31,484 nt of DNA from Octopus sinensis (lineage: Eukaryota). The notes under the pieces are model-generated. The model did no database searches and was not told the DNA's origin. It was given only the letters and a program-made list of their open reading frames with translations. The first letter of the stretch is position 1. Each line of letters opens with the position of its first letter. The stretch spans positions 1 through 31,484 of the forward strand of contig NW_021832218.1 in NCBI RefSeq assembly GCF_006345805.1, written 5' to 3'. A program made the translations under genes and the position numbers. Positions 2,517 through 31,215 of the stretch are shown in pieces.

Positions 2517-2571
2517 TGTGGTGTGTGGGTGAAGGAGTGTGACGGATGGGGGAGAGCGGAAGTGGGGCTTG
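2517..2571 (+). repeat. Truncated 5' LTR of copy 1
   Basis: Matches the first 55 nt of the LTR at 6581, then jumps into gag sequence equivalent to ~8560. About 535 bp are missing, including U5, the PBS and the gag start. Confidence 0.9.
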
Positions 2572-3060
2572 GGGAGAATGAGATGGACTGGGCAACAGGT
2601 GGAACGTGTTTGCCAATGAGCTTAGAAGACTGGCTAAATTGGCGGGTTATGAGGGAGAGTCGCTAGAACGGACGGTTGGTTAGCGTTCGTGACCGGCTTT
2701 CCCGACATCATGTCGGTCGAGCTACAGAAGCTCCCCAGCGTGCGTTCGATGCCGATGGCCGATATCATATCGCGGGCACGTGTACTGGTTTCGTGCAGCA
2801 GGTTGACGTCGGTAGCAGCGACTGTAACGTCGAAAAGTGGCCCAGCTAGGAGCAACGGAGAGGGGCTGAGGAAGAACGCGTGCGATCGTTAAAGGACAGT
2901 GTTTCCGGTGCCAAGGCCCACACATGGTCCCCGACTGCGCGTCGCCCAAGCCTGAGGTGATTTGCTACCGGTGTCGAGAGCCAGGGCATGTAGCCAGCGA
3001 GTGTCTGCGGAGAAACGACCGCGGGAGACTACTGCGCCGGTAGTCGTCCCTTTGGATTAG
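2572..3060 (+). pseudogene. gag: gag C-terminal remnant with two CCHC knuckles (frameshifted)
   Basis: Near-identical to 8560-9052; the CFRCQGPHMV and CYRCREPGHVASEC motifs are present across frames. Confidence 0.85.
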
Positions 3061-3166
3061 TAGCGGCGCGTTTTCATCGCTACCTGTGGTCGACATCTGG
3101 TGAAGGGGACTGTCGCGAGCCCTGGTGGACACGGGCTGTACAACGACCTGATGACTACGGAAGTGG

Positions 3167-3719
3167 CATCCACCAGAATGTCGTCGATGTATGAATTGGT
3201 GGCACTTTTTACTCTGTCCACCTTCCCCAGGATGGCCTTGAGAATTGTTGCCATAATCTTCGGCGCTGAATTCAGCCCGAATCCCAACCTGATCAGACAG
3301 TACGTCCGGCCCCTATACTGACGAGCTGGTACTTCCATAATTTCTCAGCCACATGCACCTGTAGGTATGCCGACTTCAAATCGACAATCGTGGAGGCCCC
3401 CGTCGTCTCCTCCACTGTCGCAAGGTGTCCCGCAGACATCCGTGGCCTCGCCGCCTGTATGACACGACACGTGGTCATTCAGCTCTCTCGGAAGTGAGCA
3501 CTGGCCTGACCTTATGCTTTGTGGGCTGTATCACCGCCATCAGTGGCATGACTCCGCTCTCTTCTTTTTCCCAGGGGATCAGTATGCCCTCCTTAATCCA
3601 CCGCTCCACCTCCCCCTCGAACTCACTTCTGGCATCTCCTTTTAGAGTATGCTGATAGCAGCCCACTTTATTCTTAACATCGGGCTCTCCCTTCCAGTGC
3701 CACTCCACTGTCCACCTCT
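3167..3719 (-). pseudogene. Inverted duplicate of the element's own RT N-terminal/core region, inserted in the protease
   Basis: Reverse complement of 4134-4691; minus-strand ORFs read YCLIRLGFGLNSAPK...NSYIDD. Confidence 0.95.
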
Positions 3720-3811
3720 AGACTGCCCTAACACTGCTTCCTCCACTCCACATGCACTTCGCAGTGCACTTCTCTTCCGTCGACTGCCCTAACACTGCTT
3801 CCTCCACTCCA

Positions 3812-6544
3812 TGGAGTGGAGGAAGCAGTGTTAGGGCAGTCGACGGAAGAGAAGTGCACTGCGAAGGGGTTACGGATGCGCAGATTGTGGTGCAGGGACT
3901 ACAGCTGACGTTGCGAGCAATTGTGGTTGGTCACTTGGTGGACGAGATTGACGTGGTGATGGGGATGGATGCAATCACCCGCTTTGGAGGTGTCACCGTC
4001 AACGAGGCTGGCGTAACGTTTGGGTTAGCGGGGAAACCGTGTAGGGCGAGACCACGCACCGACGACAACCGTGAGGTAAAGGATGCGGCGCACACCATTG
4101 AAGACCAGGATTTTCGGGCTGTCTTTGATGGCAAGAGGTGGACAGTGGAGTGGCACTGGAAGGGAGAGCCCCCGATGTTAAAGAATAAAGTGGGCTGCTA
4201 TCAGCATACTCTAAAAGGAGATGCCAGAAGTGAGTTCGAGGGGGAAGTGGAGCGGTGGATTAAGGAGGGCATACTGATCCCTTGGGAAAAAGAAGAGAGC
4301 GGAGTCCTGCCACTGATGGCGGTGATACAGCCCACAAAGCATAAGGTCAGGCCAGTGCTTGACTTCCGAGAGCTGAATCACCACGTGTCGTGTCATACAG
4401 GCGGCGAGGCCACGGATGTCTGCGAAGACACCTTGCGAGAGTGGAGGCAGACGACGGGGGCCTCCACGATTGTCGATTTGAAGTCGGCATACCTACAGGT
4501 GCATGTGGCTGAGAAATTATGGAAGTACCAGCTCGTCAGGTATAGGGGCCGGACGTACTGTCTGACCAGGTTGGGATTCGGGCTGAATTCAGCGCCGAAG
4601 ATTATGGCAACAATTCTCAAGGCCATCCTGGGGAAGGTGGACAGAGTAAAAAGGGCCACCAATTCATACATCGACGACATTCTGGTGGATGAAACCGTGA
4701 TACCAGCAACGGAGGTCATAGGCCACCTGAAGAGTTTTGGACTGATCGCCAAGCCGCCAGAGGCTATGGAGGGAGGTGCTGCACTGGGCCTCAAGCTATG
4801 GAGAGACAAGGCCGGCGCCTTGGTGTTCCGGCGAGGGAATGAGGTCCCTGAACTGGGCGCCAGCATGAGTAGACGGAACTGTTCTCTGTGTGTGGGAAGC
4901 TGGTGGGACACTACCCGATTGCAGGCTGGCTCCGGACAGCATGTAGCTTCATCAAGAGACGAGCCGAAGGAGTGAAGTGGAATGATAAAGTGGGGGGAGA
5001 GGACAATCGACATGATGCAGGAAGTCTTGGTCAGAGTAGGAGCAGAGGACCAGTGAGGGGCAACTGGTATGTTCCCAAATCAAAGAGCGGATCGTATGGT
5101 GTGACGCCAGTAGCATCGCAATAGGGGTCGTCTTGGAAGTGGGAGGTGTCACGGTGGAAGATGCGGCCTGGCTCAGGAAGATGGATGACTGCAATCACAT
5201 CAACGTGGCGGAGTTGGATGCCGTGCTGAAGGGGGTGAACCTAGCCTTGAAGTGGGGGTTGCACACCATAGAAATCAGGACTGATTCGGCCACTGTACTT
5301 GGTTGGGCGACAGCAGTCATCACCGATGAGAGGAGGGTGCGGACCAAAGGGGCTGCAGAGATCCTGGTAAAGCGTCGATTAGGAATACTGCGTGAACTAA
5401 CCACTGAGTTCAATCTGAAGCTGAGCGTGATCTTTGTGCCTTCTGAGAAGAACAGGGCAGACGTCCTGACCAGGGTAAAGCGAGCCTGGTTGAAGGTGCC
5501 AGAGGAATGCGAAGCAGGATGTAGCTGCAGTATGCCGTCTGAGCGACTCGGAGTTACGGAGACTACACACCATGCATCACATGGGTGTGGACAGGACATT
5601 GTTCCTAGCCAGAAAAGTTGACTCCGACGTAACAAGACAGAGCGTGCAGAGAGTGGTTAGCAGTTGTGACAGGTGCCAGTCCATCGACCCTGCTCCGGTC
5701 GTGCATGAAGCGGGAAGTATTCCAGTGGACCAGGACTGGAGACGACTGGCGGTGGACATAACACACTACCGGCAGGGGACATACCTCTCAATGATTGACT
5801 GCAGACCGGGGCGGGTGAAGGGAGATGAAGTCGGGGACCGCAGAAGAAATTGTGAAAGTGTTGAATGAGATATTCCTGGAACGAGGCCCCGTGGATGAAC
5901 TGCTTCTGGACAACGGCACTGCATTTCGCTCGGATGTGCTGAGAGAAATGCTTGATGAGTGGAAGGTCAACCGCTTCTTCAGGGCGGCATACCGGCCAAG
6001 TGGAAACGGGGTGGTGGAAAGGCATCATCGTACCATCAAGGCCATGGCAGAGAGGGGTCACATTTCACCAGTCGAGGCCGTGTTTTGGTACAATATGTCG
6101 CCCAGATCAGGACAGGCTGAGGAGTCGGTGCCACACAGGGCAATATTCAGGTACGAGTGGAGGCATCCGTGTACTACATCAAAGCGACCCGGGGCAGAGG
6201 AAGAGCACGCCTTCGTGCAGGTCGGGGAGGAAGTCTGGGTAAAACCCCCAAACGCACGGTGTACATCGCAATGGGGAAAGGGGACAATAACCTCCGTAAA
6301 TTCAAAGAATAACATCTCGGTCGATGGTATGCCACGCCACGTTTTGGACATACGGAGGATTGTCCATGCCCCAGAGGATGGGGCCAGCAGCAGTGGGCAA
6401 GACGAAAACAACAGACAGGATGACGAGGTCGGCAGCAACACGCCAGGTACAAGTCCTAGGGTCGCACTGCGACCACAGAGGGAGCGGCACCCTCCTCCCT
6501 GGTTGGCTGATTATGAAACCAGTTTCAGGTGCGGGAGTGAGTGA
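3812..6544 (+). pseudogene. pol: pol: protease C-half, RT, RNase H, integrase (frameshifted)
   Basis: ORF 3752-4975 (VLDFRELN, DLKSAYLQ, FGLNSAP, YIDD); ORF 5133-5621 (HINVAELDAV, IRTDS); ORFs 5572-5868 and 5825-6544 (H..H..C..C, VDIT, LLDNG, NGVVERHHRTIK). Confidence 0.92.
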
Positions 6545-6566
6545 GGAAGCCGGTTCAGTGATCTGT

Positions 6567-6580
6567 AGATCAGGGGGGCG
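6567..6580 (+). promoter_or_regulatory. Polypurine tract of copy 1
   Basis: AGATCAGGGGGGCG directly before the 3' LTR; the same 14-mer is at 12485-12498. Confidence 0.8.
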
Positions 6581-6840
6581 TGTGGTGTGTGGTGAAGGAG
6601 TGTGGCGGATGGGGGAGAGCGGAAGTGGGGCTTGCAGGGTTTGCAGGGCGCATGCGCCGGAGGAAGCGGAAGTGACAGGCAGAACGCACGTGCAGCATTG
6701 AGGAGTTGCGGAAGACAGGACGAAGGGACCAGACGAGCGAGTTGGCTAAAAGCGATCCAAGTTCATCTCCGACGAGGTAAGACCCAATTACATTTCCATT
6801 CTCCCTTTTTCTGTTGTACTCTTTTCACCGTTTACACACA
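6581..6840 (+). repeat. 3' LTR of copy 1
   Basis: Aligns along its length with 7968-8238 and 12499-12775. Confidence 0.9.
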
Positions 6841-6924
6841 CACACATCCCCCGGTCTGAGATTCGAACCCGCGAATTCTCGACCGCGAGTCCGCTGTTCT
6901 AACCACTAGGTTATGTGCCTCCAC
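6841..6924 (-). mobile_element. SINE family 2, 5' tRNA-like head
   Basis: Reverse complement GTGGAGGCACATAACCTAGTGGTTAG...GGGTTCGAATCTCAGACCGG carries Pol III A and B boxes. Confidence 0.8.
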
Positions 6925-7705: not shown

Positions 7706-7925
7706 TGGCAGAAACGTTAGCACGCCGGGCGAAATGCATATCCGTATTTCGTCTGCCGTTACGTTCTGAGTTTAAATTCCACCGAGGTCGACTTTGCCTT
7801 TCATCCTTTCGGAGTCGATAAATTAAGTACCAGTTACGCACTGGGGGCGATATAATCGACTTAATCCGTTTGTCTGTCCTTGTTTGTCCCCTCTGTGTTT
7901 AGCCCCTTGTGGGTAGTAAAGAAAT
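7706..7925 (+). mobile_element. SINE family 1, second copy (5' edge diverged)
   Basis: Co-linear with 194-414. Confidence 0.85.
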
Positions 7926-7967
7926 GCATATATGTATTATGTAAGCACGTATGTATATGCTTGTATA

Positions 7968-8238
7968 TGTGGTGTGATGGTGAAGGAGTGTGACGGAATG
8001 GGGGGGGGAGCGGAAATGGGGCTTGCAGGTCTTGCAGGGCGCATGCGCGAGCGGAAGCGGAAGTGACAGACAGAACGCACGTGCGGCATTGACCAGTTGC
8101 GCCAGACACGACGAAGACACCGAGAAGACACGACGCGAGCGAGTTGGCTAAAGGCGATCCGAGTTCATCTCCGGCCAGGTAAGACCCAATTACATTTCCA
8201 TTCCTTTCCTTGTTCTGTTGTACTCTTTTCATACTACA
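7968..8238 (+). repeat. 5' LTR of copy 2
   Basis: TGTGG start and CATACTACA end shared with the 3' LTR. Confidence 0.93.
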
Positions 8239-8250
8239 AGCTATTTCGGC
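8239..8250 (+). promoter_or_regulatory. Candidate non-canonical primer-binding site complementary to tRNA-Phe nt 1-12
   Basis: AGCTATTTCGGC is the reverse complement of GCCGAAAUAGCU, the 5' end of metazoan cytosolic tRNA-Phe(GAA). It abuts the LTR; there is no TGG-type PBS. Confidence 0.65.
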
Positions 8251-8291: not shown

Positions 8292-9052
8292 ATGCAGAGT
8301 GCTATGGTTTCACACACGAGCCTATAACACCGTTTTGCGGCGACACCGATGTGGTCGTTTGGTTGAAGAGGGTAAAGTTGGTGGCGAAGCTCCACGGTAT
8401 AGCTGACCTGGCTAGTTTTTATGCCGTTTGTATTTGGATGGCCCGGCCTTGGCGTTATATTTAGAGATGGAGGAGACGGACCAACTCAGCGCAGATAAAG
8501 TGGAGATCCGACTTATGGAGGCTTTCGCGGAAGGAATGTTTGAAGCGTACGCTCGGCTGGGTAGAATGAGATGGATTCGGACAACAGGTGGACGTGTTCG
8601 CCGGTGAGATTAGAAGGTTGGCTAAACTGGCGGGATATGAGGGAGAGTCGCTAGAACGGACGGTTAGGTTAGCGTTCGTGACCGGCTTTCCCGACATCAT
8701 GTCGGTCGAGCTACAGAAGCTCCCGAACGTGCGTTCGATGCCGATGGCCGATATCATATCGCGGGCACGTGTACTGGTTTCGTGCAGCAGGTTGACGTCG
8801 GTAGCAGCGACTGTAACGTCGAAAAGTGGCCCAGCTAGGAGCAACGGAGAGGGGCTGAGGAAAGAACGCGTGCGATCGTTCAAAGGACAGTGTTTCCGGT
8901 GCCAAGGCCCACACATGGTCCGCGACTGCGCGTCGCCCAAGCGAGAGGTGGTTTGCTACCGGTGTCGAGAGCCAGGGCATGTAGCCAGCGAGTGTCTGCG
9001 GGGAAACGGACCGCGGGAGACTACTGCGCCGGTAGTCGTCCCTTTGGATTAG
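8292..9052 (+). pseudogene. gag: gag (frameshifted) with CX2CX3HX4C and CX2CX4HX4C knuckles
   Basis: DVVVWLKRVKLVAKLHGIADLASF, then ORF 8588-9052 with CFRCQGPHMVRDC and CYRCREPGHVASEC. Start codon uncertain. Confidence 0.85.
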
Positions 9053-9163: not shown

Positions 9164-9721
9164 CATCCACCAGAATGTCGTCGATGTATGAATTGGTGGC
9201 ACTTTTTACTCTGTCCACCTTCCCCAGGATGGCCTTGAGAATTGTTGCCATAATGTTCGGCGCTGAATTCAGCCCGAATCCCAACCTGATCAGACAGTAC
9301 GTCCGGCCCCTATACCTGACGAGCTGGTACTTCCATAATTTCTCAGCCACATGCACCTGGAGGTATGCCGACTTCAAATCGACAATCGTGGAGGCCCCCG
9401 TCGTCTGCCTCCACTGTCGCAAGGTGTCTCCGCAGACATCCGTAGCCTCGCCGCCTGTATGACACGACACGTGGTCATTCAGCTCTCGGAAGTCGAGCAC
9501 TGGCCTGACCTATGCTTTGTGGGCTGTATCACCGCCATCAGTGGCAGGACTCCGCTCTCTCTTCTTTTTCCCAGGGAATCAATATGCCCTCCTTAATCCA
9601 CCGCTCCACTTCCCCTCGAACTCACTTCTGGCATCTCCTTTTAGAGTATGCTGATAGCAGCCCACTTTATTCTTTAACATCGGGGGCTCTCCCTTCCAGT
9701 GCCACTCCACTGTCCACCTCT
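9164..9721 (-). pseudogene. Inverted RT duplicate in copy 2, same junctions as in copy 1
   Basis: Reverse complement of 10053-10609; junctions GAAGTGGCATCCACCAG and CCACCTCTAGACTGCCCT are identical in both copies. Confidence 0.95.
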
Positions 9722-9731
9722 AGACTGCCCT

Positions 9732-12374
9732 GAGTGGAGGAAGCAGTGTTAGGGCAGTCGACGGAAGAGAAGTGCACTGCGAAGGAGTTACGGATGCGCA
9801 GATTGTGGTGCAGGGACTACAGCTGACGTTGCGAGCAATTGTGGTTGGTCACTTGGTGGACGAGATTGAAGTGGTGATGGGGATGGATGCAATCACTCGC
9901 TTGGGAGGTGTCAGCGTCAACGAGGCTGGCGTAACGTTTGGGTTAGCGGGGAAACCATGTAGGGCGAGACCACGCACCGACGAGACAACGCGAGGAAAAG
10001 GATGCGGCGCACACCATTGAAGACCAGGATTTTCGGGCTGTCTTTGATGGCAAGAGGTGGACAGTGGAGTGGCACTGGAAGGGAGAGCCCCCGATGTTAA
10101 AGAATAAAGTGGGCTGCTATCAGCATACTCTAAAGGTAGATGCCAGAAGTGAGTTCGAGGGGGAGGTGGAGCGGTGGATTAAGGAGGGCATACTGATCCC
10201 CTGGGAAAAAGAAGAGAGCGGAGTCATGCCACTGATGGCGGTGATACAGCCCACAAAGCATAAGGTCAGGCCAGTGCTCGAATTCCGAGAGCTGAATGAC
10301 CACGTGTCGTGTCATACAGGCGGCGAGGCCACGGATGTCTGCGGAGACACCTTGCGAGAGTGGAGGCAGACGACGGGGGCCTCCACGATTGTCGATTTGA
10401 AGTCGGCATACCTACAGGTGCATGTGGCTGAGAAATTATGGAAGTACCAGCTCGTCAGGTATAGGGGCCGGACGTACTGTCTGACCAGGTTGGGATTCGG
10501 GCTGAATTCAGCGACGAAGATTATGGCAACAATTCTCAAGGCCATCCTGGGGAAGGTGGACAGAGTAAAAGGGCCACCAATTCATACATCGACGACATTC
10601 TAGTGGATGAAACCGTGATACCAGCAACGGAGGTCATAGGCCACCTGAAGAGTTTTGGACTGATCGCCAAGCCGCCAGAGGCTATGGAGGGAGGGTGCTG
10701 CACTGGGCCTCAAAGCTATGGAGAGACAAGGCCGGCGCCTTGGTGTTCCGGCGAGGGAAGAGGTCCCTGAACTGGGCGCCAGCATGAGTAGACGGGAACT
10801 GTTCTCTGTGTGTGGGAAGCTGGTGGGACACTACCCGACCGTTGCAGGCTGGCTCCGGACAGCATGTAGCTTCATCAAGAGACGAGCCGAAGGAGTGAAG
10901 TGGAATGATAAAGTGGGGGAGAGGACAATCGACATGATGCAGGAAGTCTTGGTCAGAGTAGGAGAGCAGAGGACCCAGTGAGGGGCAACTGGTATGTTCC
11001 AAATCAAAGAGCCGGATCGTATGGTGTGACGCCAGTAGCATCGCAATAGGGGTTGTCTTGGAAGTGGGAGGTGTCCGGTGGAAGATGCGGCCTGGCTCAG
11101 GAAGATGGATGACTGCAATCATATCAACGTGGCGGAGTTGGATGCCGTGCTGAAGGGGGTGAACCTAGCCTTGAAGTTGGGGTTGCACACCATAGAAATC
11201 AGGACTGATTCATCCACTGTACTTGTTGGGCGACAGCAGTCATCACGATGAGCGGAGGGTGCGGACCAAAGGGGCTGCAGAGATGCTGGTAAAGCGTCGA
11301 TTAGGAATACTGCGTGAACTAACCACTGAGTTCAATCTGAAGCTGAGCGTGATCTTTGTGCCTTCCGAGAAGAACAGGGCAGACGTCCTGACAGGGTAAA
11401 GCGAGCCTGTTTGCAGGTGCCAGAGGATGCGAAGCAGGATGTAGCTGCAGTATGCCGTCTGAGCGACTCGGAGTTACGGAGACTACACACCATGCATCAC
11501 ATGGTGTGGACAGGACATTGTCCAGCCAGAAAAGTTGACTCCGACGTAACAAGACAGAGTGTGCAGAGAGTGGTTAGCAGTTGTGACAGGTGCCAGTCCA
11601 TCGACCCTGCTCCGGTCGTGCATGAAGCGGGAAGTATTCCAGTGGACCAGGACTGGAGACGACTGGCGGTGGACATAACACACTACTGGCAGGGGACATA
11701 CCTCTCAATGGTTGACTGCGGACCGGGGCGGATGAAGGGAGATGAAGTCGGGGACCGCAGAAGAAATTGTGAAAGTGTTGAATCAGATATTCCTGGAACG
11801 AGGCCCCGTGGATGAACTGCTTCTGGACAACGGCACTGCATTTCGCTCGGATGTGCTGAGAGAAATGCTTGATGAGTGGAAGGTCAACCGCTTCTTCAGG
11901 GCGGCATACCGGCCAAGTGGAAACGGGGTGGTGGAAAGGCATCATCGTACCATCAAGGCCATGGCAGAGAGGGGTCACATTTCACCAGTCGAGGCCGTGT
12001 TTTGGTACAATATGTCGCCCAGATCAGGACAGGCTGAGGAGTCGGTGCCACACAGGGCAATATTCAGGTACGAGTGGAAGGCATCCGTGTACTACATCAA
12101 TGCGACCCGGGCAGAGGAAGAGCACGCCTTCGTGCAGGTCGGGGAGGAAGTCTGGGTAAAACCCCCAAACGCACGGTGTACATCGCAATGGGGAAAGGGG
12201 ACAATAACCTCCGTAAATTCAAAGAATAACATCTCGGTCGATGGTATGCCACGCCACGTTTTGGACATACGGAGGATTGTCCATGCCCAGAGGATGGGAC
12301 AAGCAACAGTGGGCAAGACGAAAACAACAGATAGGATGACGGGTCGGCAGCAACACACCAGAAACAAGTCCTAG
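9732..12374 (+). pseudogene. pol: pol remainder of copy 2 (PR C-half, RT, RNase H, integrase), heavily frameshifted
   Basis: ORFs 9772-10020, 10064-10603, 11411-11815 and 11742-12374 parallel copy 1. Confidence 0.9.
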
Positions 12375-12498
12375 GGTCGCACTGCGACCACAGAGGGAGC
12401 GGCACCCTCCTCCTGGTTGGCTGATTATGAAACCAGTTTCAGGTGCGGGAAGATGTGAGTGAGGAAGCCGGTTCAGTGATCTATAGATCAGGGGGGCG

Positions 12499-12775
12499 TG
12501 TGGTGTGTGTGAGGGGGAAGGATTGTGACGGATGGGGGGTGGAGTAGTGGGCTTGCAGGTCTTGCAGGGCGCATGCGCGGAGGAAGCGGAAGTGACAGAC
12601 AGAACGCACGTGCGGCATTGACCAGTTGCGACAGACACGACGACGAAGACACCGAGAAGAAACAGACGCGAGCGAGTTGGCTAAAGGCGATCCGAGTTCA
12701 TCTCGGCCAGGTAAGACCCAATTACATTTCATTCTTTCCTTGTTCTGTTGTACTCTTTTCACCATTCATACTACA
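12499..12775 (+). repeat. 3' LTR of copy 2
   Basis: Follows the PPT at 12485-12498 and ends CATACTACA before the TSD. Confidence 0.93.
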
Positions 12776-12921
12776 GTATATATATGTATGTAGTATGTAG
12801 TATGTATGATGTATGTATGTATGTATGTATGTGTGTATGTATGTATGTATGTGCATGTGTGTGTATGTATGTATGTACGCATGAATGTATTTGAGAATGT
12901 ATGTATTTGCATGTGTGTATG

Positions 12922-13259: not shown

Positions 13260-13325
13260 AAACTAGAATCAATCAATCAATCAATCAATCATATACATAC
13301 ATACTTATATATATATATATATATA
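13260..13325 (+). repeat. Inverted copy of the LINE 3' tip, (AATC)n tail and its flank
   Basis: AAACTAGAATCAATC...ATATACATACATACTTATATATA is the reverse complement of ~15655-15720. Confidence 0.85.
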
Positions 13326-13406
13326 CAATTGCAGCGTGGAAGGTGTTTATAAGCCATTTAAGAAACACACAAAAGCCGTTCGATTCACTCCACATTTAAG
13401 TTTTAA

Positions 13407-13456
13407 TTTGTCAAAATATTTTCGTCGCTAAAATCCGCGACCTATTCACTGACAAA
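13407..13456 (-). ncRNA. Variant minimal hammerhead-like motif (G3-U8 core, intact GAAA)
   Basis: Reverse complement TTTGTCA GTGAATA G GTCGC GGATTTTA GCGAC GAAA ATAT T T TGACAAA. Confidence 0.4.
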
Positions 13457-13473
13457 GTCCGTGCTGCACGGAC

Positions 13474-13523
13474 TTTGTCAGTGAACAGGTCGCGGATTTT
13501 AGCGACGGAAATATTTTGACAAA
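13474..13523 (+). ncRNA. Variant minimal hammerhead-like motif (G3-C8 core; GGAA instead of GAAA)
   Basis: TTTGTCA / GTGAACA / G / GTCGC-loop-GCGAC / GGAA / ATAT / T,T / TGACAAA. Confidence 0.4.
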
Positions 13524-13666
13524 TTAAATTAAATGTTGGAGTGAATCGAACGGCTTTGTGTGTTTCTTAAATGGCTTATAAACACCTTCCACGCTGCAAT
13601 TGTTTTCGTTCAGCACACGATCTCAGATCAAATTACTTGCTATGCGAGTAATCTCCGAAAATATAT

Positions 13667-13728
<62 letters not shown>

Positions 13729-14020
13729 TTCAACAATTGAGGGTAAAATTAATTAATTAATTAATCAATTTCACCAAGTATTCAGTATGCAAAGGGACCA
13801 TTTAAGGCGAATTTCAAATTATTACATTATATAAAAGGGCTTAGTAAAATAAATTACTTTGCCGCATACTGAACTCGTTAGAAAATAGCAGCTAAAAAAA
13901 ACTTTTTATTAAAAAACTATTTCTAACACTTAAAGAAAATCTCTCTCATATAGTGTTTGCTCAATTCAACTCAAGAAAGTATGGGGGTAGAGACATTAAA
14001 AATCAAATGCAAAGGTTATT

Positions 14021-14072
14021 TGAGTACGTACGTTTCAAGATTAGTCCAAATCGACCCTCTCTCATCAGCTCA
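14021..14072 (-). ncRNA. Type I minimal hammerhead ribozyme
   Basis: Reverse complement UGAG / CUGAUGA / GAGAGGGUCGAUUUGGACUAAUCUU / GAAA C GUAC G U A / CUCA. Confidence 0.8.
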
Positions 14073-14176
14073 GAATGCCCTTGTTTTGAATTTGAAAACA
14101 CTGAAAATGGGAGCATACCCTTTCCCTTGTTATCGCTTCCCATTTTCAGTGTTTTCAAATTCAAACAAGGGCATTC

Positions 14177-14228
14177 TGAGCTGATGAGAGAAGGGTCGAT
14201 TTTGATAATCTTGAAACGTACGTACTCA
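14177..14228 (+). ncRNA. Type I minimal hammerhead ribozyme
   Basis: Stem I TGAG 14177-80 with CTCA 14225-28; CTGATGA 14181-87; GAAA 14213-16; 2-bp stem III with palindromic GTAC loop; predicted cleavage after A14224. Confidence 0.8.
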
Positions 14229-14412
14229 AATAACCTTTGCATTTGATTTTTTAATGTCTCTACCCCCATACTTTCTTGAGTTGAATTGAGCAAACACTAT
14301 ATGAGAGAGATTTTCTAAGTGTTAGAAATAGTTTTATAAAAGTTTTTTAGCTGCTATTCTAACGAGGTTCAGTATGCGGCAAAGTAATTTATTTACTAAG
14401 CCCTTTTATATA

Positions 14413-14867
14413 AATATATATATATATATAACATACTTATATATATACGTACATATATATATATACATATATATATACATATATATACATATATATATAC
14501 ATATATATACATATATATATAATTCTAATACATATATATATACATACATATATTACATTCTTATATATATCACATATATATACATACACACACACACATA
14601 TATATATATATACATACACACACACATATATATAGATACACACACACATATATATACATACACACACATATATATACATACACACACACACACACAAACA
14701 CACATATATATACATACACACACACATATATATATACATACACACACACATACATATATACATACACACACACACATATATATACATACACATATACATA
14801 TATACATACATACATACACACACACATATATATACATACACAGACACACACACACATATATATACAT

Positions 14868-14904
<37 letters not shown>

Positions 14905-15072
14905 CATACACACGCACATATATATACTAGGGTCATAGTTATGGGTGACAATTTCATATGACACCGCTAGAAAAAACTGACGTTCAAACCGAAAACTGGG
15001 ATCTTTTCGGTTTGAACGGCAGTTTTTTCTTGCGGTGTCATATGAAATTGTCACCCATAATTATGACCCTAG

Positions 15073-15113
<41 letters not shown>

Positions 15114-15414
15114 ATATATATGTGTGTGTGTATGTATATATATATATGTGTGTGTGTATGTATGTATGTATGTATGTATGTATGTATGTATGTATGTATG
15201 TATGTATGTATGTGTGTATGTATATATATGTGTGTGTGTGTGTATGTATACATGTATGTGTGTGTGTATGTATATATATATGTGTGTGTGTATGTATATA
15301 TATGTGTGTTTGTGTGTGTGTGTGTATATATATGTGTTGTGTGTATGTATATATATGTGTGTGTGTATGTATATATATGTGTTGTATGTATATATATGTG
15401 TGTGTGTATGTATA

Positions 15415-15458
<44 letters not shown>

Positions 15459-15660
15459 ATGTATATATATGTGAGTGTGTGTATTTGTGTTGTATGTATA
15501 TATATGTGATTATATATAAGTATGTATATATATGTATGTAATATATATATGTATATATAAGTATATATATATGTATATTATGTATATATATATGTATATA
15601 TTATGTATATATATATGTATATATATATATGTACATATATATATAAGTATGTTTATATAT
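14413..15660. repeat. Long imperfect palindrome centred on 14996-15003
   Basis: Unique core 14927-14995 / 15004-15072 (CTAGGGTCATA...TTCAAACCGAAAA and its complement), with the mirrored microsatellite pattern continuing outward. Confidence 0.85.
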
Positions 15661-15689
15661 ATATATATATATATAAGTATGTATGTATA

Positions 15690-17442
15690 TGATTGATTGA
15701 TGATTGATTGATTCTAGTTTCAGCTCATGAGCTGTGGCCATGCTGGGGCACTGTCATTTGGTGTTGCTGCTTGGTTTTACTTCACTAAAGCTTTTTAGCA
15801 ACTGCCATTTGGGTGCTGAGAGAGTTCGATGCAGCTGCCCTCATCTGCACCTCCTGCCGTGAAGTTGGTTCATCTGGGACCTGACAGGAAGAGATCCAGT
15901 TTCATTTTAAAGACATCTGCATTCACCCCATGCAGGTCTTCAGGTTCTTCAGGAGGATATTGAAGAGCTGTGGGCCTCGGAAGCCCAGGCTATCACAGTA
16001 TCTTGTCCTACATCTTGATGGCAAATTGGGAGTCCTAGGCAACACGCAGTGGGCGCCCGTTCTGGCATTCGTGTAACTCTCGATGCCAAAGTTTGAGACA
16101 CGTCCCTCCAGGATCTTCCAGATGTATATTATGGTATATCTTTCCCATACGCTCCAAGGAATATGGTTTTAATCTCTTGAGTCTTTCCCAGTAGTTTACA
16201 TTCTGCATAGAGGCAATCTTCTTGTGTGTAGCTACGCTGGATCGCCTCGAGCTCTGTGATCAACTTGACACTGGATGGTGACCATAACTGAGAGCAATAG
16301 TCAAAGTGGCTTAGGACAAGTGTCCTCCAGAGGACCATCATGGTTTCTGGTTCTCTTGTTCAAGGTTCTGAGAATCCATCCGGCCAGTGTCTACATTTCA
16401 TTGCCAATTTAGCAAACATGTACACGAAAGGTTGCGTCATCACTCATGTAAATACCCAGGTCACGCACTGATTGTGCCTCTGGGATTGCTATTCCTCCGG
16501 GTCCAGTGTATTCATTGGGTATTTGCATTTAGTTTTGCATGCTGATAGTATAAAGCTTGAAACTTTTCAGCATTGAACTGCATGCTATTCTTTTCAGCCC
16601 ACTTGTATATTTTGTCCAGCTCACTTGCAGGCGTTTAGTGTCCTCAGGGTTCTGTATTGCCTGTGAAACTTTTGTATCATCTGCATAACTTGTGATCGTG
16701 GCTCTCTGCGTGGCTGAGGGCATGGTGAGAGGGCCATTATGAACAGTAGTGGTCCCAGAACAGTGCCATGCGGAACACCGCTCACTATTTGCGTGTTAAG
16801 GAAGTGGCCCACCCATTGGCTACTACCACCTGACTTCTATCTTTCAGAAAGTCATGAAGCCATACTCCCAGTTTTCCAACTATGCCAAGATCACGCAGTT
16901 TGTGACATATCATTCCATGATCGACTTTATCGAGATATATCACTTCCACATTTGAGTGGTTGAGCAGCCGTTTCAGCACCCAGTCATAATGTTGTAGGAG
17001 CTGAGTTAAACAGCTTCTCCCTGGTCGGAAACCATGTTAGGTGTCGGGCAGCAAGTCATTTTCTTCAAGGAAAGTGATCAGTTTCCTTCTGACTATTCGT
17101 TCCATGACCTTGCTGATGTGTGAGGTCAGAGATATAGGTCTGTAGTTCTTGGCCTCCGCTCTGCTACATCATTTATGAATGGACATTCCTTCAGTTTTCT
17201 TGGAAGTTTGCCAGCTGCAAGGAAGCTCTGAAAGAGGAACTGCAGTGGTCTTGCTAGGACTCTCTTACATGCTTTTAGGAGGATTGCTGGGAATCCATCG
17301 GGGCCAGTAGCTGAGTCTGTTTTCATTTCATCTATAGCCTTGATTACATCGTCTTCCTTTATATCGATGTAATCTATCGTCGCCGCTCTGATTTTATATC
17401 TGCAGAGGTAAAGAAGTCAGTTGGATTGGTGATTTGGAGATG
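15690..17442 (-). mobile_element. CR1/L2-type LINE, 5'-truncated copy 1 with (AATC)n tail
   Basis: Minus-strand RT pieces: ATGPDGFPAILLK, SGVPHGTVLGPLLF, YADDTK, SHFDYCSQLWSP; frameshifted. Confidence 0.9.
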
Positions 17443-17923
17443 TATATATATATGTACCTATATATATATATACATAGACACAGACACACACAAACACACA
17501 TATATATACATACACACACACACATATATATATATATATACATACACACACACACATATATATATATATATACATACACACACACACACACATATATATA
17601 TACATACACACACACATATATATATATATACATACACACACACACATATATATACATACACACACATATATATACATACACCCTGTGTCATCCATGTTTT
17701 TAACCGTTACTGTCTCCAAAGAAGATTTTTCGTTTCATGTTCGTCTCTGTTGCGTTGCATTCTTTCCTTCTGTGGCTTGCTGATTCGGAGCGGATCTCAG
17801 ATTTGAATGGCCGAAATCTGCGATGAGGGATCAGTTTCTGACTGAAGAATGAAGGCATTGAATGACCCGTTTGTCTCTTTGTTCGTCCCTTCGTGTATTT
17901 CACGTTATTTATTTATGTAAAGG

Positions 17924-17967
<44 letters not shown>

Positions 17968-18002
17968 ATATGTATGTATGTATATATATATATATATATA
18001 TA

Positions 18003-18382
18003 TCTATATATAAACGGCAGTTTGTCTGTGCGTGTTTCTGTGTGTCTGTTTGCTTGTACCCTCACCCTGACCACGGCTTTCAACGATTCTGATGAAACTT
18101 GACACACACATACCCCAATGTCATAATTCAAAACTAACGCAGCGAAAATTTTGAAAAGTTCCCCCAGTTCTGAAAAAAATCGATAAATTCGGACATGGGG
18201 TCGAGAATCAGAAACACAAACCACAAACTGTCTAGGGGACGCTACTCACCTTTTAACTCTCAAAAAATAAATTTACCATAATTTTTTTCCATTTTTTTTG
18301 CTATTTTTTGGCTATAACTCTCTAAAAATGCTTTAAAGTTATTTCCCTCACAAACCCGAGCAACGCCGGGCGATACTGCTAG
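18003..18382 (+). mobile_element. Non-autonomous Helitron, 380 bp
   Basis: 5' TC(TATATATAAA); subterminal hairpin CCCGAGC-AAC-GCCGGG at 18355-18370; 3' CTAG; inserted between A18002 and T18383 with no TSD. Confidence 0.8.
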
Positions 18383-18691
18383 TATGTATATATACATATA
18401 TATGTGTGTATATATATATGTGTGTGTGTATGTATATATATATATGTGTGTGTGTATGTATATATGTATGTGTGTATGTATATATGTATGTGTGTGTATA
18501 TATATATATGTGTGTGTGTGTATGTATATATATGTGTGTACGTATATATATGTGTGTGTGTGTATGTATATATATGTGTGTTTGTGTGTGTATGTATATA
18601 TATATGTGTGCGTGTGTGCATGTATGTATATATATGTGTGTGTATGTATATATATATATATATGTTATTATTTATTTATGTAAACGTTTAT

Positions 18692-18736
<45 letters not shown>

Positions 18737-21062
18737 ATGTATATATATGTGTGTGTGTGTATGTATATATATGTGTGTGTGTGCATGTATTATATATGAT
18801 GTGTGTGTGTCATGTATAATATATATATATGTGTGTGTGTATGTATATATATGTGTGTGTGTGTATGTATATATATGTGTGTGTGTATGTATATATATAT
18901 ATATATATATGTTATTATTTATTTATGTAAAGGTTTATTATTATACATATATATATATATGTGGTGTGTGTATGTAATATATATTATATATATATATATA
19001 TATAAATGTTAGTATTTATTTATCTAAATGTTTATTATATACATATATATGTATATGTATATCTGTATGTATATATATATGTGTGTGTATTGCATTCTAT
19101 CCTCCTGTGGCTGGCTGATTCGGAGCGGATCTCAGAATTAAACAGCCGAATTCTGCGATGAGGGATCAGTTTCTGACTGAAGAATGAAAGCTTTGAATGA
19201 CCCGTTTGTCTTTTGGTTCGTTCGGTCGTGTATTTCACGTTATTTATTTATGTAAAGGTTTATTATATATTCGCAGCGTACGTGCATAATAAATTCTTTA
19301 TGTTATCATATCAAAACCCCTGCACGATGTATTAAACTATTTTCTTCCTTCGCCATTGCTTCGTTGCCAAATTGTTTTGGCGCCCTTTTTCTCCCAGCCC
19401 TCTCTGATTCCTTCTCTCCCTCTCTCTCGGTCACTTCTTCTGTCCCCGCCTTCTACCCTCCTTGCCCCTCTCTCTCTTAGCCCCTCCTCTCTCTTACCCT
19501 CTTGCGACTTGCTGCCTCAGCCATTCTGTTTACATCGGCTACTTTGTTCACATTGTCTTATCACCGAAAAAGGTAATTATTTTTCCACGCTTGCTGATAT
19601 TGTTTTGTGGCTCTCTTTTTGTGTTAAAGCCGTTGGGCGCCTGTGTATCCATGTTTTTAACGTTGATGTCTCCAAAAAAGATTTTTCGTTTCATGTTTTC
19701 TCTGTTGCGTTGCATTCTTTCCTTCTGTGGCTGGCTGAGTCGAGTAGCGGATCTCAGAATTGAACGGCCGAAATCTGCGATGAGGTATCAGTTTCTGACT
19801 GAAGAATGAAGGCTTTGAATGAACCCGTTTGTCTTTTTGTCGTCCCTTCGTGTATTCACGTGTATTTATGTAAATGTTTATTATAATTAAATATGATATT
19901 ATGTATGTGTGTATAGTGTATGTATGTATATATATATGTATAATATATGATGATGATATTATATATATATATATGTGTGTGTTGTATATAATATATGTGT
20001 GTGTGGTATGTATTATGGATTGTGTGTGTTGTAGTTTATATATGTAAGTGTGTGTGTATGTATAGAATATGTGGTGTGTGTAGTATATATATATGTGTGT
20101 GTGTATGTATATATATGTGTGTTATGTGTTGTAGTAATATATATATGGGTGGTGTGTGTATAAGTTATATATGTTGTTTGGGTGTGTGTGTATGATATAT
20201 ATATGGGTGTGTGTATGTATTATATATGGTGTGGGTGTGCATGTATATATATGTGTGTGTGTATGTTATAATATGTGTGTGTGTGCATGTTATATATATA
20301 TATATATGTTATTATTTATTATCTAAAGGTTATTATATACATATATATATATAGTATGTTGTATGTATATATATGTGGGGTGTGAGTATGTATATCATAT
20401 GTGTGTGTGTGCATGTATATACATGTGTGTGGTATTGTATATATATATATATGTTATTATTTATTATGTAAAGGTATATACATATACATATATATGTGTG
20501 TGTGTATGTATATATATATATATAGTTATTATTTATTTATCTAAAGGTTTATTATATACTATATAATATATGTATGTGTGTATGTTATATAGTGTGGTGT
20601 GTATGTATATATATATATATTGTATATTTATTTATGTAAAGTTTTATTATATACAATATGTATGTGCGTATGTATATATATGTGTGTGCGTGTATGTATG
20701 TATATGTATGTGTGTGTTTCATGTTCGTCTCTGTTGCATTGCATTCTTTCCTTCTGTGGCTGTGCTGATTCGGAGCGGATCTCGGAATTAAACAGCCGAA
20801 ATCTGCGATGAGGGATCAGTTCTGACTGAAGAATGAAGGCTTTGAATGACCCGTTTGTCTTTGTTCGTCCCTTCGTGTATTTCACGTTTATTTATTTATG
20901 TTAAAAGTTTATTATATATTTTGCAGCGTACTTGCATAATAACTATTTATGTTTATCATATCACAACCCCTGCACGATGTCTTTAAACTATTTTCTTTCC
21001 TTCGCCATTGCTTCGTTGCCAAATTGTTTTCGCGCATTTGTTTCCCAGCCTCTCTAATTCCT

Positions 21063-21094
<32 letters not shown>

Positions 21095-21517
21095 GGTCAC
21101 TGCTTCTGTCCTCGTCTTCTACCCTCCTTGGTCACATCTCTCTCTTGCGACTTGCTGCCTCAGGCATTCTGTTTCCATTGGCCACTTGTTCAACATGTGT
21201 CTTATCACCGAAAAGGTAATTATTTTTCCACGCTTGCTGATATTGTTTTGGTGGCTCTCTTTTTGTGTTAAAGCCGTAGGGACCTGTGTCATCCATGTTT
21301 TAACCGTACTGTCTCCAAAAAAGATTTTTCGTTTCATGTTCGTCTCTTGTGCGCGCATTCTTCCTTCTGTGGCTGGGCTGATTCGGAGCGGATCTCAGAA
21401 TTGAACGGCCGAAATCTGCGATGAGGGATCAGTTCTGACTGAAGAATGAAGGCTTTGAATGACCCGTTTGTCTTGTTGTTCGTCCCTTCGTGTATTTCAC
21501 GTTATTTATGTAAATGT

Positions 21518-21604
<87 letters not shown>

Positions 21605-22153
21605 TGTATGTATATATATATGTGTATATATATATATGTGTGTATGTATATATATATGTGTGTGTGTATGTATATATATATATGTGTGTGTGTGTATGTA
21701 TATATGTGTGTGTGTATGTATATATGTATGTGTGTGTGTATGTATATATATGTGTGTGTATGTATATATGTGTGTTTGTGTGTGTATGTATATATATATG
21801 TGTGCGTGTGTGGTAAGTAGTATAGATGTGTTTGTGTGGGTGTGTATTATATATATTGTGTGTGTGTATGTATAATATGTGTGTGTGCATGGTATTATAT
21901 ATGTGTGTGTGTATTATATATATGTGTGTGTGTATGTATATATATATATATGTTATTGAATTTATTTATGTAAAGGTTTATTATATAATATATAATATAT
22001 ATGTGTGTGTAGTATATATATATATATGTTATTATTTATTTATCTAAAGGTTTATTACTTTGATACTTTGATTGTTATTATTTATATCTAAAGGTCTATT
22101 ATATACATATACATATATATATGTATGTGTGTATGTATATATATGTGTGTGTG

Positions 22154-22200
<47 letters not shown>

Positions 22201-23186
22201 TTATGTTATTATTTTTTATGTAAAGTTTTATTATTTACATATAGATATATATTATATATGTGTGTGTATGTATATATATGTGTGTGTGTATATATATATA
22301 TGTGTGTTTGTGTTTCATGTTCGTCTTGTTGCGTTGCATTCTTTCTTCTGTGCTGGCTTATTCGGAGCGGATCTCAGAATTAAACAGCCGAAATCTGCGA
22401 TGAGGGATCAGTTCTAACTGAAGAATGAAGGCTTGAATGACCCGTTTGTCTTTTGTTCGTCCCTTCGTGTATTTCACGTTATTTATTTGTAAAGGTTTAT
22501 TATATTTTCGCAGCGTACGTGCATAATAACTTCTTTATGTTATCATACCCAAACCCCATCACGATGTCTTTAAAATATTTTGCTTTCTCGCATTGCTTCG
22601 TTGCCAAATTGTTTTGGCGCCTTTTCTCCCAGCCTCTCTGATTCCTTCTCTCCCTCTCTCTCTTGATCACTGCTCTTCTCTATTCCTTCTCTCCCCACCT
22701 CTCTCTCTCTCTCTCTCTTCTCGGTCACTGCTTCTGTCTCGCCTTCTACCCTCCTTCTACCCTCCTTGTTCCCCTGTCTCTCTTAGTCCTTCCTCTCTCT
22801 ACCCCTTGCGACTTGCTGCCTCAGCCATTCTGTTAATCGGCCACGTGTTCAACATGTGTCTTATCACCGAAAAGGGTAATTATTTTTCCACGCTTGCTTA
22901 TATTGTTTTTGTGTGTCCCTTTTTGTGCTAAAGCCGTAGGGCGCCGGGATCATCCTGGTTTTAACCGTTACTGTCTCCAAAAAGATTTTTCGTTTCATGT
23001 TCGTCTCTGTTGCGTTGCATTCTTTCCTTCTGTGGCTGGCTGATTCGGAAGCGGATCTCAGAATTGAAAGGCCGAAATCTGCGATGAGGGATCAGTTTCT
23101 GACTGAAGAATGAAGGCTTTGAATGACCCGTTTGTCTTTTTGTTCGTCCCTTCGTGTATTTCACGTTATTTATTTATGTAAAGGTT

Positions 23187-23228
<42 letters not shown>

Positions 23229-23351
23229 GTATGTATGTATATATATATATATGTATGTATATTTATATATGTATATATATATATGTGTGTATGTATATAT
23301 ATATGTGTGTGTATGTATATATATATATGTGTGTTGTATGTATATATATAA

Positions 23352-26075: not shown

Positions 26076-27532
26076 AGTACACATAATAACATATATATGT
26101 TATTATTTATTTATCTAAAGGTTTACTATATACACATATATATATATGTATGTGTGTATGTATATATATGTGTGTGTGTGCATGTATATATATCTGTGTG
26201 TGTATGTATATATATGTGTGTGTGTATGTATATATATATATATGTTATTATTTATTTATGTAAATGTTTATTATATACATATATATTTATATGTGTGTGT
26301 GTATGTATATATATATATATATGCTATTATTTATTTATCTAAAGGTTTATTATATACATATATATATATATATGTATGTGTGTATGTTTATATATTTGTG
26401 TGTGTGTATGTATATATATGTGTGTATGTGCATGTATATATATGTGTGTGTGTATGTATATATATATATATATATATATATGTTATTATTTATTTATGTA
26501 AAGGTTTATTATATACATATATATATATATATGTGTGTGTGTATGTATATATATATATATAGTTATTTATTTATGTAAAGGTTATTATATACATATATAT
26601 ATATGTATGTGTGTATGTATATTATATATGTGTGTGGTATGTATATATATATGTGTGTGTGTGTTTCATGTTCGTCTCTGTTGCGTTGCATATTTCCTTC
26701 TGTGGCTGGCTGATTCGGAGCGGATCTCAAAATTAAAAAGCCGAAATCTGCGATGAGGGTCAGTTTCTGACTGAAGAATGAAGGCTTTGAATGACCCGTT
26801 TGTCTTTTTGTTCGTCCCTTCGTGTATTTCACGTTATTTATTTATGTAAAGGTTTTTATATATTTCGCAGCGTACGTGCAATAATAACTTCTTTATGTTT
26901 ATCATATCAAACCCCCTGCACGATGTCTTTAAACTATTTTCTTTCCTTCGCCATTGCTTCGTTGCCAAATTGTTTAGGCGCCTTTTTCTCCCAGCCTCTC
27001 TGATTCCTTCTCTCCCTCTCTCTCTCTCTTGATCACTGCTTCTTCTCTGATTCTTTCTCTCCCCCTCTCTCTCTCTCTCGGTCACTGCTTCTGTCCTCGC
27101 CTTCTACCCTCCTTGGTCCCCTCTCTCTCTTAACCCCTCCTTTCTCTTACTCTCTTGCGACTTGCTGCCTCAGCCATTCTGCTTCCATCGGCCACTTGTT
27201 CAACATGTGTCTTATCACCGAAAAGGTAATTATTTTCCACGCTTGCTGATATTGTTTTGTGTCTCTTTTTGTGTGTAAAGCCATAGGTGGTGTGTGTCAT
27301 CCATGTTTTTAACCGTTGCTGTCTCCAAAAAAGATTTTTCATTTCATGTTCGTCTCTGTTGCGTTGCATTTTCCTTCTGTGTCTGGCTGATTCGGAGCGG
27401 ATCTCAGAATTGAACGGCCGAAATCTGCGATGAGGGATCAGTTTCTGACTGAAGAATGAAGGCTTTGAATGACCCGTTTGTCTTTTTGTTCGTCCCTTCG
27501 TGTATTTCACGTTATTTATTTATGTAAATGTT

Positions 27533-27584
<52 letters not shown>

Positions 27585-29240: not shown

Positions 29241-29300
<60 letters not shown>

Positions 29301-29304
<4 letters not shown>

Positions 29305-29804
29305 AACATTTGCATATAAATAAATATATAAATTGAGGGAGATAAATATATATATAAATTGAGGGAGATAAATTAATATTAATTTTATATCAATTTAAAA
29401 ACCAGTAGTCCAGCATTCAAAAAATCTGAGGAGTCAGAGAAAATTCAAATATATGTGTATATTGGCAGGGCTGGCCTGCTAGGAGCCGGCCAGAATGCTA
29501 GAAGAAGATCATCAACGATCAAACTGCAAGGGAAATTCTCTAGGGAAGAATTCAGCGATCACCAGAACCAAATTGGCGGGCAGGACATATGAAAAATTAA
29601 ATAAAAAACAGACTTAAATGCATACCTCGGTTTCGGTCTTAACAAAAGAATTACTTGCATAATTCAAATGTCCGTGACTTTATCAGTACATTCGGTCCTC
29701 GAGATGTAAACCGCAAGACTAACCCCAGCTCTCTGTGTCAAGACAGACACGTGCTTAGTCTTACTGATTACATCGGGAATAAAATTTCAAATGTCTTGGT
29801 TCTG
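29301..29804. other. Unassigned insert in a (TA)n tract of the macrosatellite spacer
   Basis: Present in only one unit; begins with AATTGAGGG plus an AT-rich run similar to 13735-13765. Confidence 0.5.
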
Positions 29805-29845
29805 ATATATATATATATATGTATGTATATATGTATATATGTATG

Positions 29846-29877
<32 letters not shown>

Positions 29878-31051: not shown

Positions 31052-31084
<33 letters not shown>

Positions 31085-31215
31085 GTTATTATTTATTTAT
31101 GTAAAGGTTTATTATATACATATATATATATGTATGTGTGTATGTATATATATATGTGTGTGTGTATATATATATATATATGTTATTATTTATTTATGTA
31201 AGGTTTATTATATAT

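Follow-up and report, generated by a model that had tools for sequence, protein, structure and literature searches.

A probable primer-binding site for the 5' end of tRNA-Phe in an octopus LTR retrotransposon and its relatives

The present study deals with a 12-nt site behind a long terminal repeat (LTR) in the genome of Octopus sinensis. It lies in a stretch of 31,484 nt (NCBI RefSeq assembly GCF_006345805.1, contig NW_021832218.1, positions 1 to 31,484 of the forward strand), which as a whole is referred to as the window. The window harbors two copies, A and B, of the same LTR retrotransposon family, and their components are compiled in Table 1. Two LTRs with TG..CA ends and the flanking 5-bp target-site duplication (TSD) GTATA identify copy B as an LTR retrotransposon. 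Its LTRs were aligned with blastn (7969-8231 versus 12503-12761, 91.4% identity); the 5' LTR starts with T7968 and ends with C8237 and A8238, and the 12-mer AGCTATTTCGGC (A8239 to C8250) follows flush, with zero gap. Copy B is a dead element with a split gag, a broken pol and an inserted duplicate of its reverse transcriptase (RT) segment. The gag remnant extends over two frames (8428-8550 and 8579-9043), with the zf-CCHC match in the open reading frame (ORF) 8588-9052, and pol lacks a long ORF and contains at least one frameshift near 11735 (10004-11734 in frame 2, 11736-12281 in frame 3). The inverted duplicate (9164-9721 versus 10609-10053, 96.4% identity) covers pol residues 172-357 on the minus strand.

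Table 1. Components of the two retrotransposon copies in the window (positions counted from its first letter)
Feature	Positions	Strand	Evidence or remark
Copy B: TSD, left copy GTATA	7963-7967	+	identical five bases at 12776-12780
Copy B: 5' LTR, 271 bp, TGTGGTG...ACTACA	7968-8238	+	blastn against 3' LTR; end read directly
Copy B: probable primer-binding site (PBS) AGCTATTTCGGC	8239-8250	+	complement of tRNA-Phe(GAA) nt 1-12; position and motif recur in relatives
Copy B: gag remnant with CCHC zinc knuckle	8428-9043	+	tblastn with gag of the intact metagenome element L035
Copy B: inverted RT-segment duplicate, between gag and pol	9165-9716	-	copy of about 10053-10609
Copy B: pol remnant (RT, DUF7047, RNase H, integrase)	10004-12281	+	tblastn; rve match in 11742-12374
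Copy B: polypurine tract AGGGGGGCG	12490-12498	+	precedes 3' LTR; similar tracts before the 3' LTR in L003 and L005
Copy B: 3' LTR	12499-12775	+	blastn against 5' LTR; same ...ACTACA end
Copy B: TSD, right copy GTATA	12776-12780	+	directly 3' of the 3' LTR
Copy A: same family, 5'-deleted	2517-6834	+	about 96% identical to copy B
Copy A: pol pieces	3827-6496		
Copy A: inverted RT fragment	3168-3714	-	same fragment as copy B 9165-9716
Copy A: 3' LTR	about 6579-6834		

The reverse complement of AGCTATTTCGGC is GCCGAAATAGCT, the start of the metazoan tRNA-Phe(GAA). The published forward primer for human tRNA-Phe(GAA), GCCGAAATAGCTCAGTTGGGAG (PMC10505166), agrees with an exact complementarity of the site to nt 1-12 of this tRNA, and in two papers on Drosophila tRNA-Phe (PMC6542536, PMC7038984) AGCTATTTCGGC itself is present, in both cases presumably as a probe sequence. 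The complementary portion of the tRNA comprises the 5' side of the acceptor stem (nt 1-7), U8, A9 and the D-stem nucleotides G10-C11-U12. Beyond U12 no pairing is possible, since the A with which the LTR has to end (in CA; A8238) faces C13. A PBS of the TGG type, which would match the CCA at the 3' end of a tRNA, is missing behind the 5' LTR of copy B, where the bases after the 12-mer read AAATAATCATTCGG. The original prediction, made from the letters of this DNA, had already claimed this arrangement, namely an LTR end at CA 8237-8238 fixed by the 3' LTR and the TSD, an exact complement of the tRNA 5' end, the lack of a TGG site nearby and a pairing that stops at the LTR edge; coordinates, the blastn pair, both TSD copies, direct reading of the bases and the published tRNA sequences bear out all four points. 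The 12-mer occurs a single time in the window (both strands searched), with about 0.004 exact matches of a random 12-mer expected in 2 x 31.5 kb. ARAGORN found no tRNA gene in the window. Rfam gave zero matches in the window at the gathering threshold, and at E <= 1 the segment 6800-8300 yielded only one sub-threshold microRNA match.

A protein search retrieved relatives with 40-61% identity to the window element in protease (PR) and RT. The named hosts among them include two molluscs (an argonaut and a sea slug), the cnidarian Hydra, a bryozoan, a sea spider and three crustaceans (a mantis shrimp, a shrimp and an amphipod); no relatives were found in IMG/VR. The clade, which is widespread in metazoans, exhibits the domain order gag, PR, RT, DUF7047, RNase H and integrase (IN). 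The element type is small (about 4-5 kb), those members that are intact reaching only about 4 kb. In one of these, the metagenome element L035, the LTRs measure 170 bp, gag encodes 264 aa and starts with an ATG that directly adjoins the PBS, and pol encodes 986 aa. In L035 as well as in the likewise intact L046, gag contains a CCHC knuckle, and pol comprises PR, RVT_1, DUF7047, RNase H, Integrase_H2C2 and rve. The remnants in the window together with L035 and L046 document the gypsy-type order of gag, PR, RT, RNase H and IN, followed by the polypurine tract. The label "Gypsy", under which the element had initially been described, thus stands for the gene order only: the RNase H of the clade matches PF00075 and PF13456 (RVT_3) without a match to the Ty3-type RNase H models, and the best matches of the RT profile among solved structures are retroviral RTs, albeit weak ones (E = 2e-7 or weaker). 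A profile search against 1.84 billion representative proteins returned 16,038 at E <= 0.001. This low number sets the clade far apart from most RTs; at E <= 1e-30 its size amounts to 939 protein clusters (50% identity). Judged from these protein comparisons, RT and RNase H appear to define a clade that is distinct from the classical Ty3/gypsy elements and as yet without a name. Many of the metagenome contigs (L011, L015, L017, L018, L019, L021, L023, L029, L038, L039 and L050) are terminally redundant, their start being identical with their end, and have unit lengths of 3.6-4.6 kb; such a redundancy would be expected of tandem forms, of circles with one LTR or of an assembly in which the two LTRs have been collapsed.

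Our comparative survey of the LTR/PBS junctions covered loci from public assemblies and 80 metagenome contigs that encode relatives. In ten loci beyond the window the boundaries of the LTR pair, determined without using the motif, place it right after the 5' LTR. AGCTATTTCGGC follows directly on ...ACTACA in Plakobranchus (L005) and on ...TTTACA in Hydra (L006). The corresponding stretches are AGCTAATTTCGGC, with a 1-nt insertion, in Argonauta (L003), AGCTATATCAGC in Watersipora (L007), AGCTATCTAGGC in Palaemon (L228) as well as in the metagenome elements L035 and L046, AGCTATCCCAGC in L001 and AGCTATTTCAGA in L002. The exact 12-mer is retained behind the LTR of elements with only 40-60% RT identity, namely in Plakobranchus, Hydra and five metagenome loci. 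Forty-five related loci include at least 1 kb of sequence upstream of PR, and 42 of them possess a 12-mer resembling a tRNA 5' end about 600-1200 nt upstream of PR; in these 42 the terminal ACA of the LTR is directly followed by AGCTAT-NNN-GGC or a close variant, with the ATG of gag 0-40 nt further on. Among their hosts are the argonaut, the sea slug, Hydra, the bryozoan, the shrimp and the amphipod. Of the three exceptions, L004 is disrupted by miniature inverted-repeat transposable elements (MITEs), and L076 and L077 are ambiguous. In L004 (Oratosquilla oratoria) a search for LTRs found none, the repeats being TTAA-flanked MITEs: five copies of about 250 bp (8641-8903, 11630-11865, 14600-14846, 15931-16190 and 17881-18127), with TTAACCC...GGGTTAA terminal inverted repeats and piggyBac-like TTAA ends, are located around and inside the relative of the window element.

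The information content of 49 non-redundant junctions is 1.7-2.0 bits at positions -3 to -1 (ACA) and +1 to +6 (AGCTAT), low at +7 to +9 and 1.3-1.7 bits at +10 to +12 (GGC); it drops to 0.39 bits at +13 and to about 0.1 from +14 onward. Opposite the invariant bases lie G1-C2-C3 and A7-U8-A9-G10-C11-U12 of the tRNA, and opposite the variable ones nt 4-6 of the acceptor stem. None of the 49 junctions has a TGG (3'-CCA-type) PBS. The conservation within the clade excludes a chance origin of the 12-mer. Tabulating the bases behind the 5' LTR of relatives, which had been proposed as a check of the original prediction, therefore came out strongly in its favor, since the relatives carry the 12-mer or variants that keep the complement of nt 1-3 and 7-12. 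Two observations named beforehand as speaking against it, a normal TGG site in the relatives and a better match of the 12-mer to the start of the element's transcript in the LTR, did not occur.

The variants of the site provide further clues about the candidate partner tRNAs. GCCCGGATAGCT, found as a variant in L010, equals nt 1-12 of tRNA-Lys3 according to the documented sequence of this tRNA. GCCTAGATAGCT begins all ten tRNA genes in which it was found in IMG/VR contigs, and all ten are tRNA-Phe(GAA). One of them is eukaryote-type, starts with GCCTAGATAGCTCAGTTGGGAGAGCG... and has no encoded CCA. This gene, at 2329-2403 of a contig filed as viral (L107, IMGVR_UViG_3300046655_000646), adjoins a tRNA-Thr and two tRNA-Ser genes, and the contig may stem from a giant virus or represent misfiled eukaryotic DNA. 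GCCGCGATAGCT and GCCGTGATAGCT begin bacterial or phage genes for tRNA-Thr and tRNA-Phe. One family has a C at +1 (CGCTAT... for AGCTAT...), as expected for pairing with tRNAs that carry G12. The shape of the variants, which resembles that of real tRNA 5' ends, supports the proposed pairing without proving it, and the identity of the tRNA is documented for the Phe and Lys3 variants only. From the sites themselves, nt 1-12 of the respective host tRNAs are predicted to read GCCUAGAUAGCU in the two crustaceans Palaemon carinicauda and Trinorchestia longiramus, GCUGAUAUAGCU in Watersipora and GCCGAAAUAGCU in molluscs and Hydra. In the RT tree the PBS types are interspersed, with the CGC and CAC types as sister taxa and the Phe type in at least four separate branches; this distribution fits a matching to host tRNAs better than plain inheritance. 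The loci L001-L087 contain no tRNA genes.

Taken together, the position and complementarity of the site and its conservation in the clade make it probable that it is a PBS for a tRNA 5' end. For positions 8239-8250 we estimate a probability of about 0.72 that they serve as the minus-strand PBS of the element and pair with nt 1-12 of the host cytoplasmic tRNA-Phe(GAA) rather than with its 3' CCA end. The earlier suggestion that this family may prime from a 12-nt 5' tRNA fragment gains support from the clade-wide occurrence of the site. According to the scenario that we propose, the tRNA or its 5' fragment would be cut between nt 12 and 13 (U12|C13), and the 3'-OH of U12 would prime a minus-strand strong-stop DNA beginning with the complement of ...ACA. 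Plus-strand strong-stop synthesis would later run off the 5' end of the primer and thereby restore the 12 nt, no more and no less, that the second strand transfer needs. With the plus-strand strong-stop DNA ending at the 5' end of the primer, the abrupt loss of conservation behind +12 would be understandable. The only modification known from nt 1-12 of eukaryotic tRNA-Phe is m2G10, which hinders neither pairing nor copying, and the modifications that cause hard stops are located further 3'.

The most likely candidate for the agent of the cut is the RNase H encoded by the element, which would work where the RNA:RNA duplex ends. This proposal draws on the analogy with Tf1, whose RNase H cuts an RNA duplex between bases 11 and 12 and releases an 11-nt primer (PMC7175516). 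On a more tentative level, to which we give somewhat less than even odds, the element RNA would invade the acceptor and D stems of the intact tRNA, its own RNase H would cut at U12|C13 and the 12-mer would prime. A comparable degree of caution applies to the idea that it is the unusual, cellular-type RNase H of the element that cuts, in which case the self-priming of Tf1 would follow the same chemistry, except that the partner of the primer site would have been transferred to the LTR of the element itself.

Several observations weigh against the proposed priming by a tRNA 5' end. The duplex is short (12 bp), and its formation requires that acceptor stem and D stem are both melted. No additional complementarity to tRNA-Phe of at least 7 nt, of the kind known from Ty1, Ty3 and retroviruses, recurs within +/-150 nt of the PBS in ten Phe-type loci, and folding of the region -60 to +12 in 35 loci gave no signal of a conserved U5 hairpin beside the PBS like that of Tf1 (mean z-score +0.4). 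The CGCGGC, CACGGC, CTAGGC, CCCAGC and ATCAGC variants are only putative complements of tRNA 5' ends. The CTAGGC type occurs in two crustaceans, and the 5' end of the fly tRNA-Phe, GCCGAAA, mismatches it; judged from this mismatch, the crustacean elements would have to use a different tRNA or an isodecoder. Finally, it was mostly the motif that served to locate the junctions in the metagenome loci, which makes the information at +1 to +6 and +10 to +12 partly circular; no such circularity affects the drop after +12, the ten boundaries derived from LTR pairs or the constant distance to PR.

The same pairing could also be established by a primer that exists beforehand as a small RNA, either a 5' tRNA fragment generated by a host nuclease or an RNA polymerase III transcript with a tRNA-like 5' end. 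Such fragments are common in animal cells, and the sequence does not discriminate who makes the cut. A pre-cleaved half tRNA is indeed the primer of copia-type elements (PMC6317226). A longer fragment would nevertheless still need trimming between nt 12 and 13 for a paired 3'-OH, and the constant mismatch of A and C13 at the LTR edge fits a cut that is defined by the duplex end, as in Tf1. The 5' tRNA fragments known so far are 14-35 nt long, with ends in the D loop or the anticodon loop, and are not known to stop after nt 12 in the D stem. We regard a ready-made primer as rather unlikely, although it deserves serious consideration.

Much less credit is due to the two explanations that dispense with the tRNA. 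The lowest probability, hardly above zero, is assigned to self-priming of the Tf1/sushi type, in which the 12-mer finds its partner at the start of the transcript, within the LTR of the element itself, and its likeness to a tRNA is incidental. A resemblance to Tf1 and Tj1 (PMC4600332, PMC7175516) exists in the primer length (12 versus 11 nt), the direct contact of PBS and LTR and the missing TGG site, but the best match to the reverse complement of the PBS within 450 nt upstream amounts to 7-8 of 12 positions in 42 of 44 loci, which equals the values for shuffled targets, and to 8 of 12 in the window. LTR matches at this null level contradict a self-primer. The sole outlier is L045, where GCCTATATAGCT, located 327 nt upstream of the PBS, matches 11 of 12 positions, a single case in the 44 loci; this distance is beyond the approximately 170-bp LTRs of near relatives, and the TATA-box-like stretch is probably outside the LTR and likely a chance match. 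Only slightly better placed, and still very improbable, is a conservation of the block for another role in packaging, in translation start or in connection with integrase, with priming elsewhere and a coincidental tRNA likeness. The gag ATG within 0-40 nt places the block inside the translation-initiation region, as this explanation would have it. The block nevertheless occupies the standard position of the PBS in LTR elements, and no alternative PBS candidate is present. Moreover, its invariant and variable positions correspond to the universally conserved and the stem-variable positions of tRNAs, two variants equal documented tRNA 5' ends, and the conservation stops exactly at nt 1 of the tRNA. 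The probability that a 12-mer agrees exactly, by chance, with one out of about 50 tRNA 5' ends is about 3e-6 per site.

Copy A went through an internal deletion that fused the first approximately 54 bp of its 5' LTR (2517-2571) to gag (from about 2566, corresponding to copy B 8561), thereby removing U5, the PBS and the start of gag. The loss of this PBS explains why the window contains only a single one. Both copies carry the inverted RT duplicate of about 550 bp between gag and pol, which is 96-97% identical to the forward segment. Because it is shared by two separate insertions, a rearranged and probably non-autonomous variant of the element may have been mobilized in trans. Directly after the 3' LTR of copy A, the minus strand of 6850-6920 looks tRNA-derived with a box-B-like GGTTCGAATC; neither ARAGORN nor Rfam made a call in this stretch, which may represent the head of a short interspersed nuclear element (SINE). 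A repeat of about 220 bp (194-413 and 7706-7925, 91% identity), whose second copy ends 43 bp upstream of the copy B LTR, probably represents a SINE or some other dispersed element. Repeats make up the right two thirds of the window (13300-15700 and 17680-31484), among them long microsatellite-like arrays with an 8-nt period. For example, the segments 13827-14413 and 14408-15601 match their own reverse complements in palindromic arrangements, and an array of units of about 1.6 kb with 80-97% mutual identity extends from about 17.7 kb.

A survey from 2019 distinguished three types of primers for LTR elements, i.e., the whole tRNA used with its 3' end, the half tRNA resulting from a cut in the anticodon stem, and the self-primer (PMC6317226). 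The clade-wide PBS for nt 1-12 of a tRNA would, if true, represent a fourth type of minus-strand primer for LTR retroelements. That no such case had been described was already surmised in the original prediction; our search of the full-text literature, which included the exact 12-mers and had subscription journals outside its coverage, likewise failed to reveal a paper in which a PBS matches the 5' end of a tRNA, and its matches for AGCTATTTCGGC are tRNA papers and not transposon papers. Goodwin and Poulter (2001) are said by a citing paper (PMC7175516) to have proposed "novel mechanisms of priming" for Cryptococcus Tcn2-5. Because standard tools for LTR annotation seek complements of tRNA 3' ends, the PBS of these elements would escape them or be scored wrongly. 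Conventional PBSs are the targets of 3' tRNA fragments, and the question arises whether 5' tRNA fragments act for or against elements of the present type as part of host defense. A testable prediction is an RT-RNase H activity that cleaves tRNA in the D stem.

Comparison with known systems sets the clade apart from the established modes of tRNA priming. Canonical priming by a tRNA 3' end does not apply, given the absence of a TGG site in the window and the 49 junctions. Mouse IAP/IAPE elements use the same tRNA-Phe species (PMC7472051), but their PBS of 18 nt is directed to its 3' end, whereas the window element would pair with the opposite one. The clade resembles copia, Ty5, Osser and Bianca in that a 5' fragment of a host tRNA would replace the 3' CCA end and would have to be released by an internal cleavage (PMC6317226). 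However, the cut of the copia/Ty5 type lies in the anticodon stem-loop and the PBS pairs just 5' of it, whereas here the complementarity covers nt 1-12 and nothing else, with a cut expected in the D stem and a primer that would be paired over its full length; a half-tRNA PBS is accordingly rejected. The half-tRNA elements are moreover of the copia order and use initiator Met or Ile tRNA, unlike the present clade.

Odin, the lokiretroviruses and Troyka, deep lineages that were described only recently, are likewise LTR elements of invertebrates outside the classical Ty3/gypsy group. Troyka is ruled out as the identity of the clade by CG..CG termini and 3-bp TSDs (PMC12440569) versus TG..CA and 5 bp in the window element. 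Odin, which has a dual RNase H and has been reported from sea anemones only (PMC9040795), is not supported either; here, only about 90 aa (DUF7047) are located between RT and RNase H. Neither the Troyka nor the Odin paper mentions a PBS.

Tf1, Tf2 and Tj1 share with the clade a PBS that abuts the LTR and, if the proposed priming holds, a very short and fully paired primer of 11 nt in Tf1 and 12 nt here (PMC7175516, PMC4600332). As in Tf1, both ends of the primer would be defined, with the 3'-OH stemming from an RNA cut at the end of an RNA:RNA duplex. In contrast to Tf1, whose primer comprises the first 11 nt of its own transcript, the clade has no complement of the site in the LTR, and the partner appears to be the 5' end sequence of a host tRNA. 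The proteins differ as well, since the clade lacks a match to a chromodomain and its RNase H matches PF00075/RVT_3 and not the Ty3-type models. If the cleavage of an intact tRNA holds true, the clade would link tRNA priming with the self-priming of the Tf1 type and might represent an evolutionary bridge between the two.
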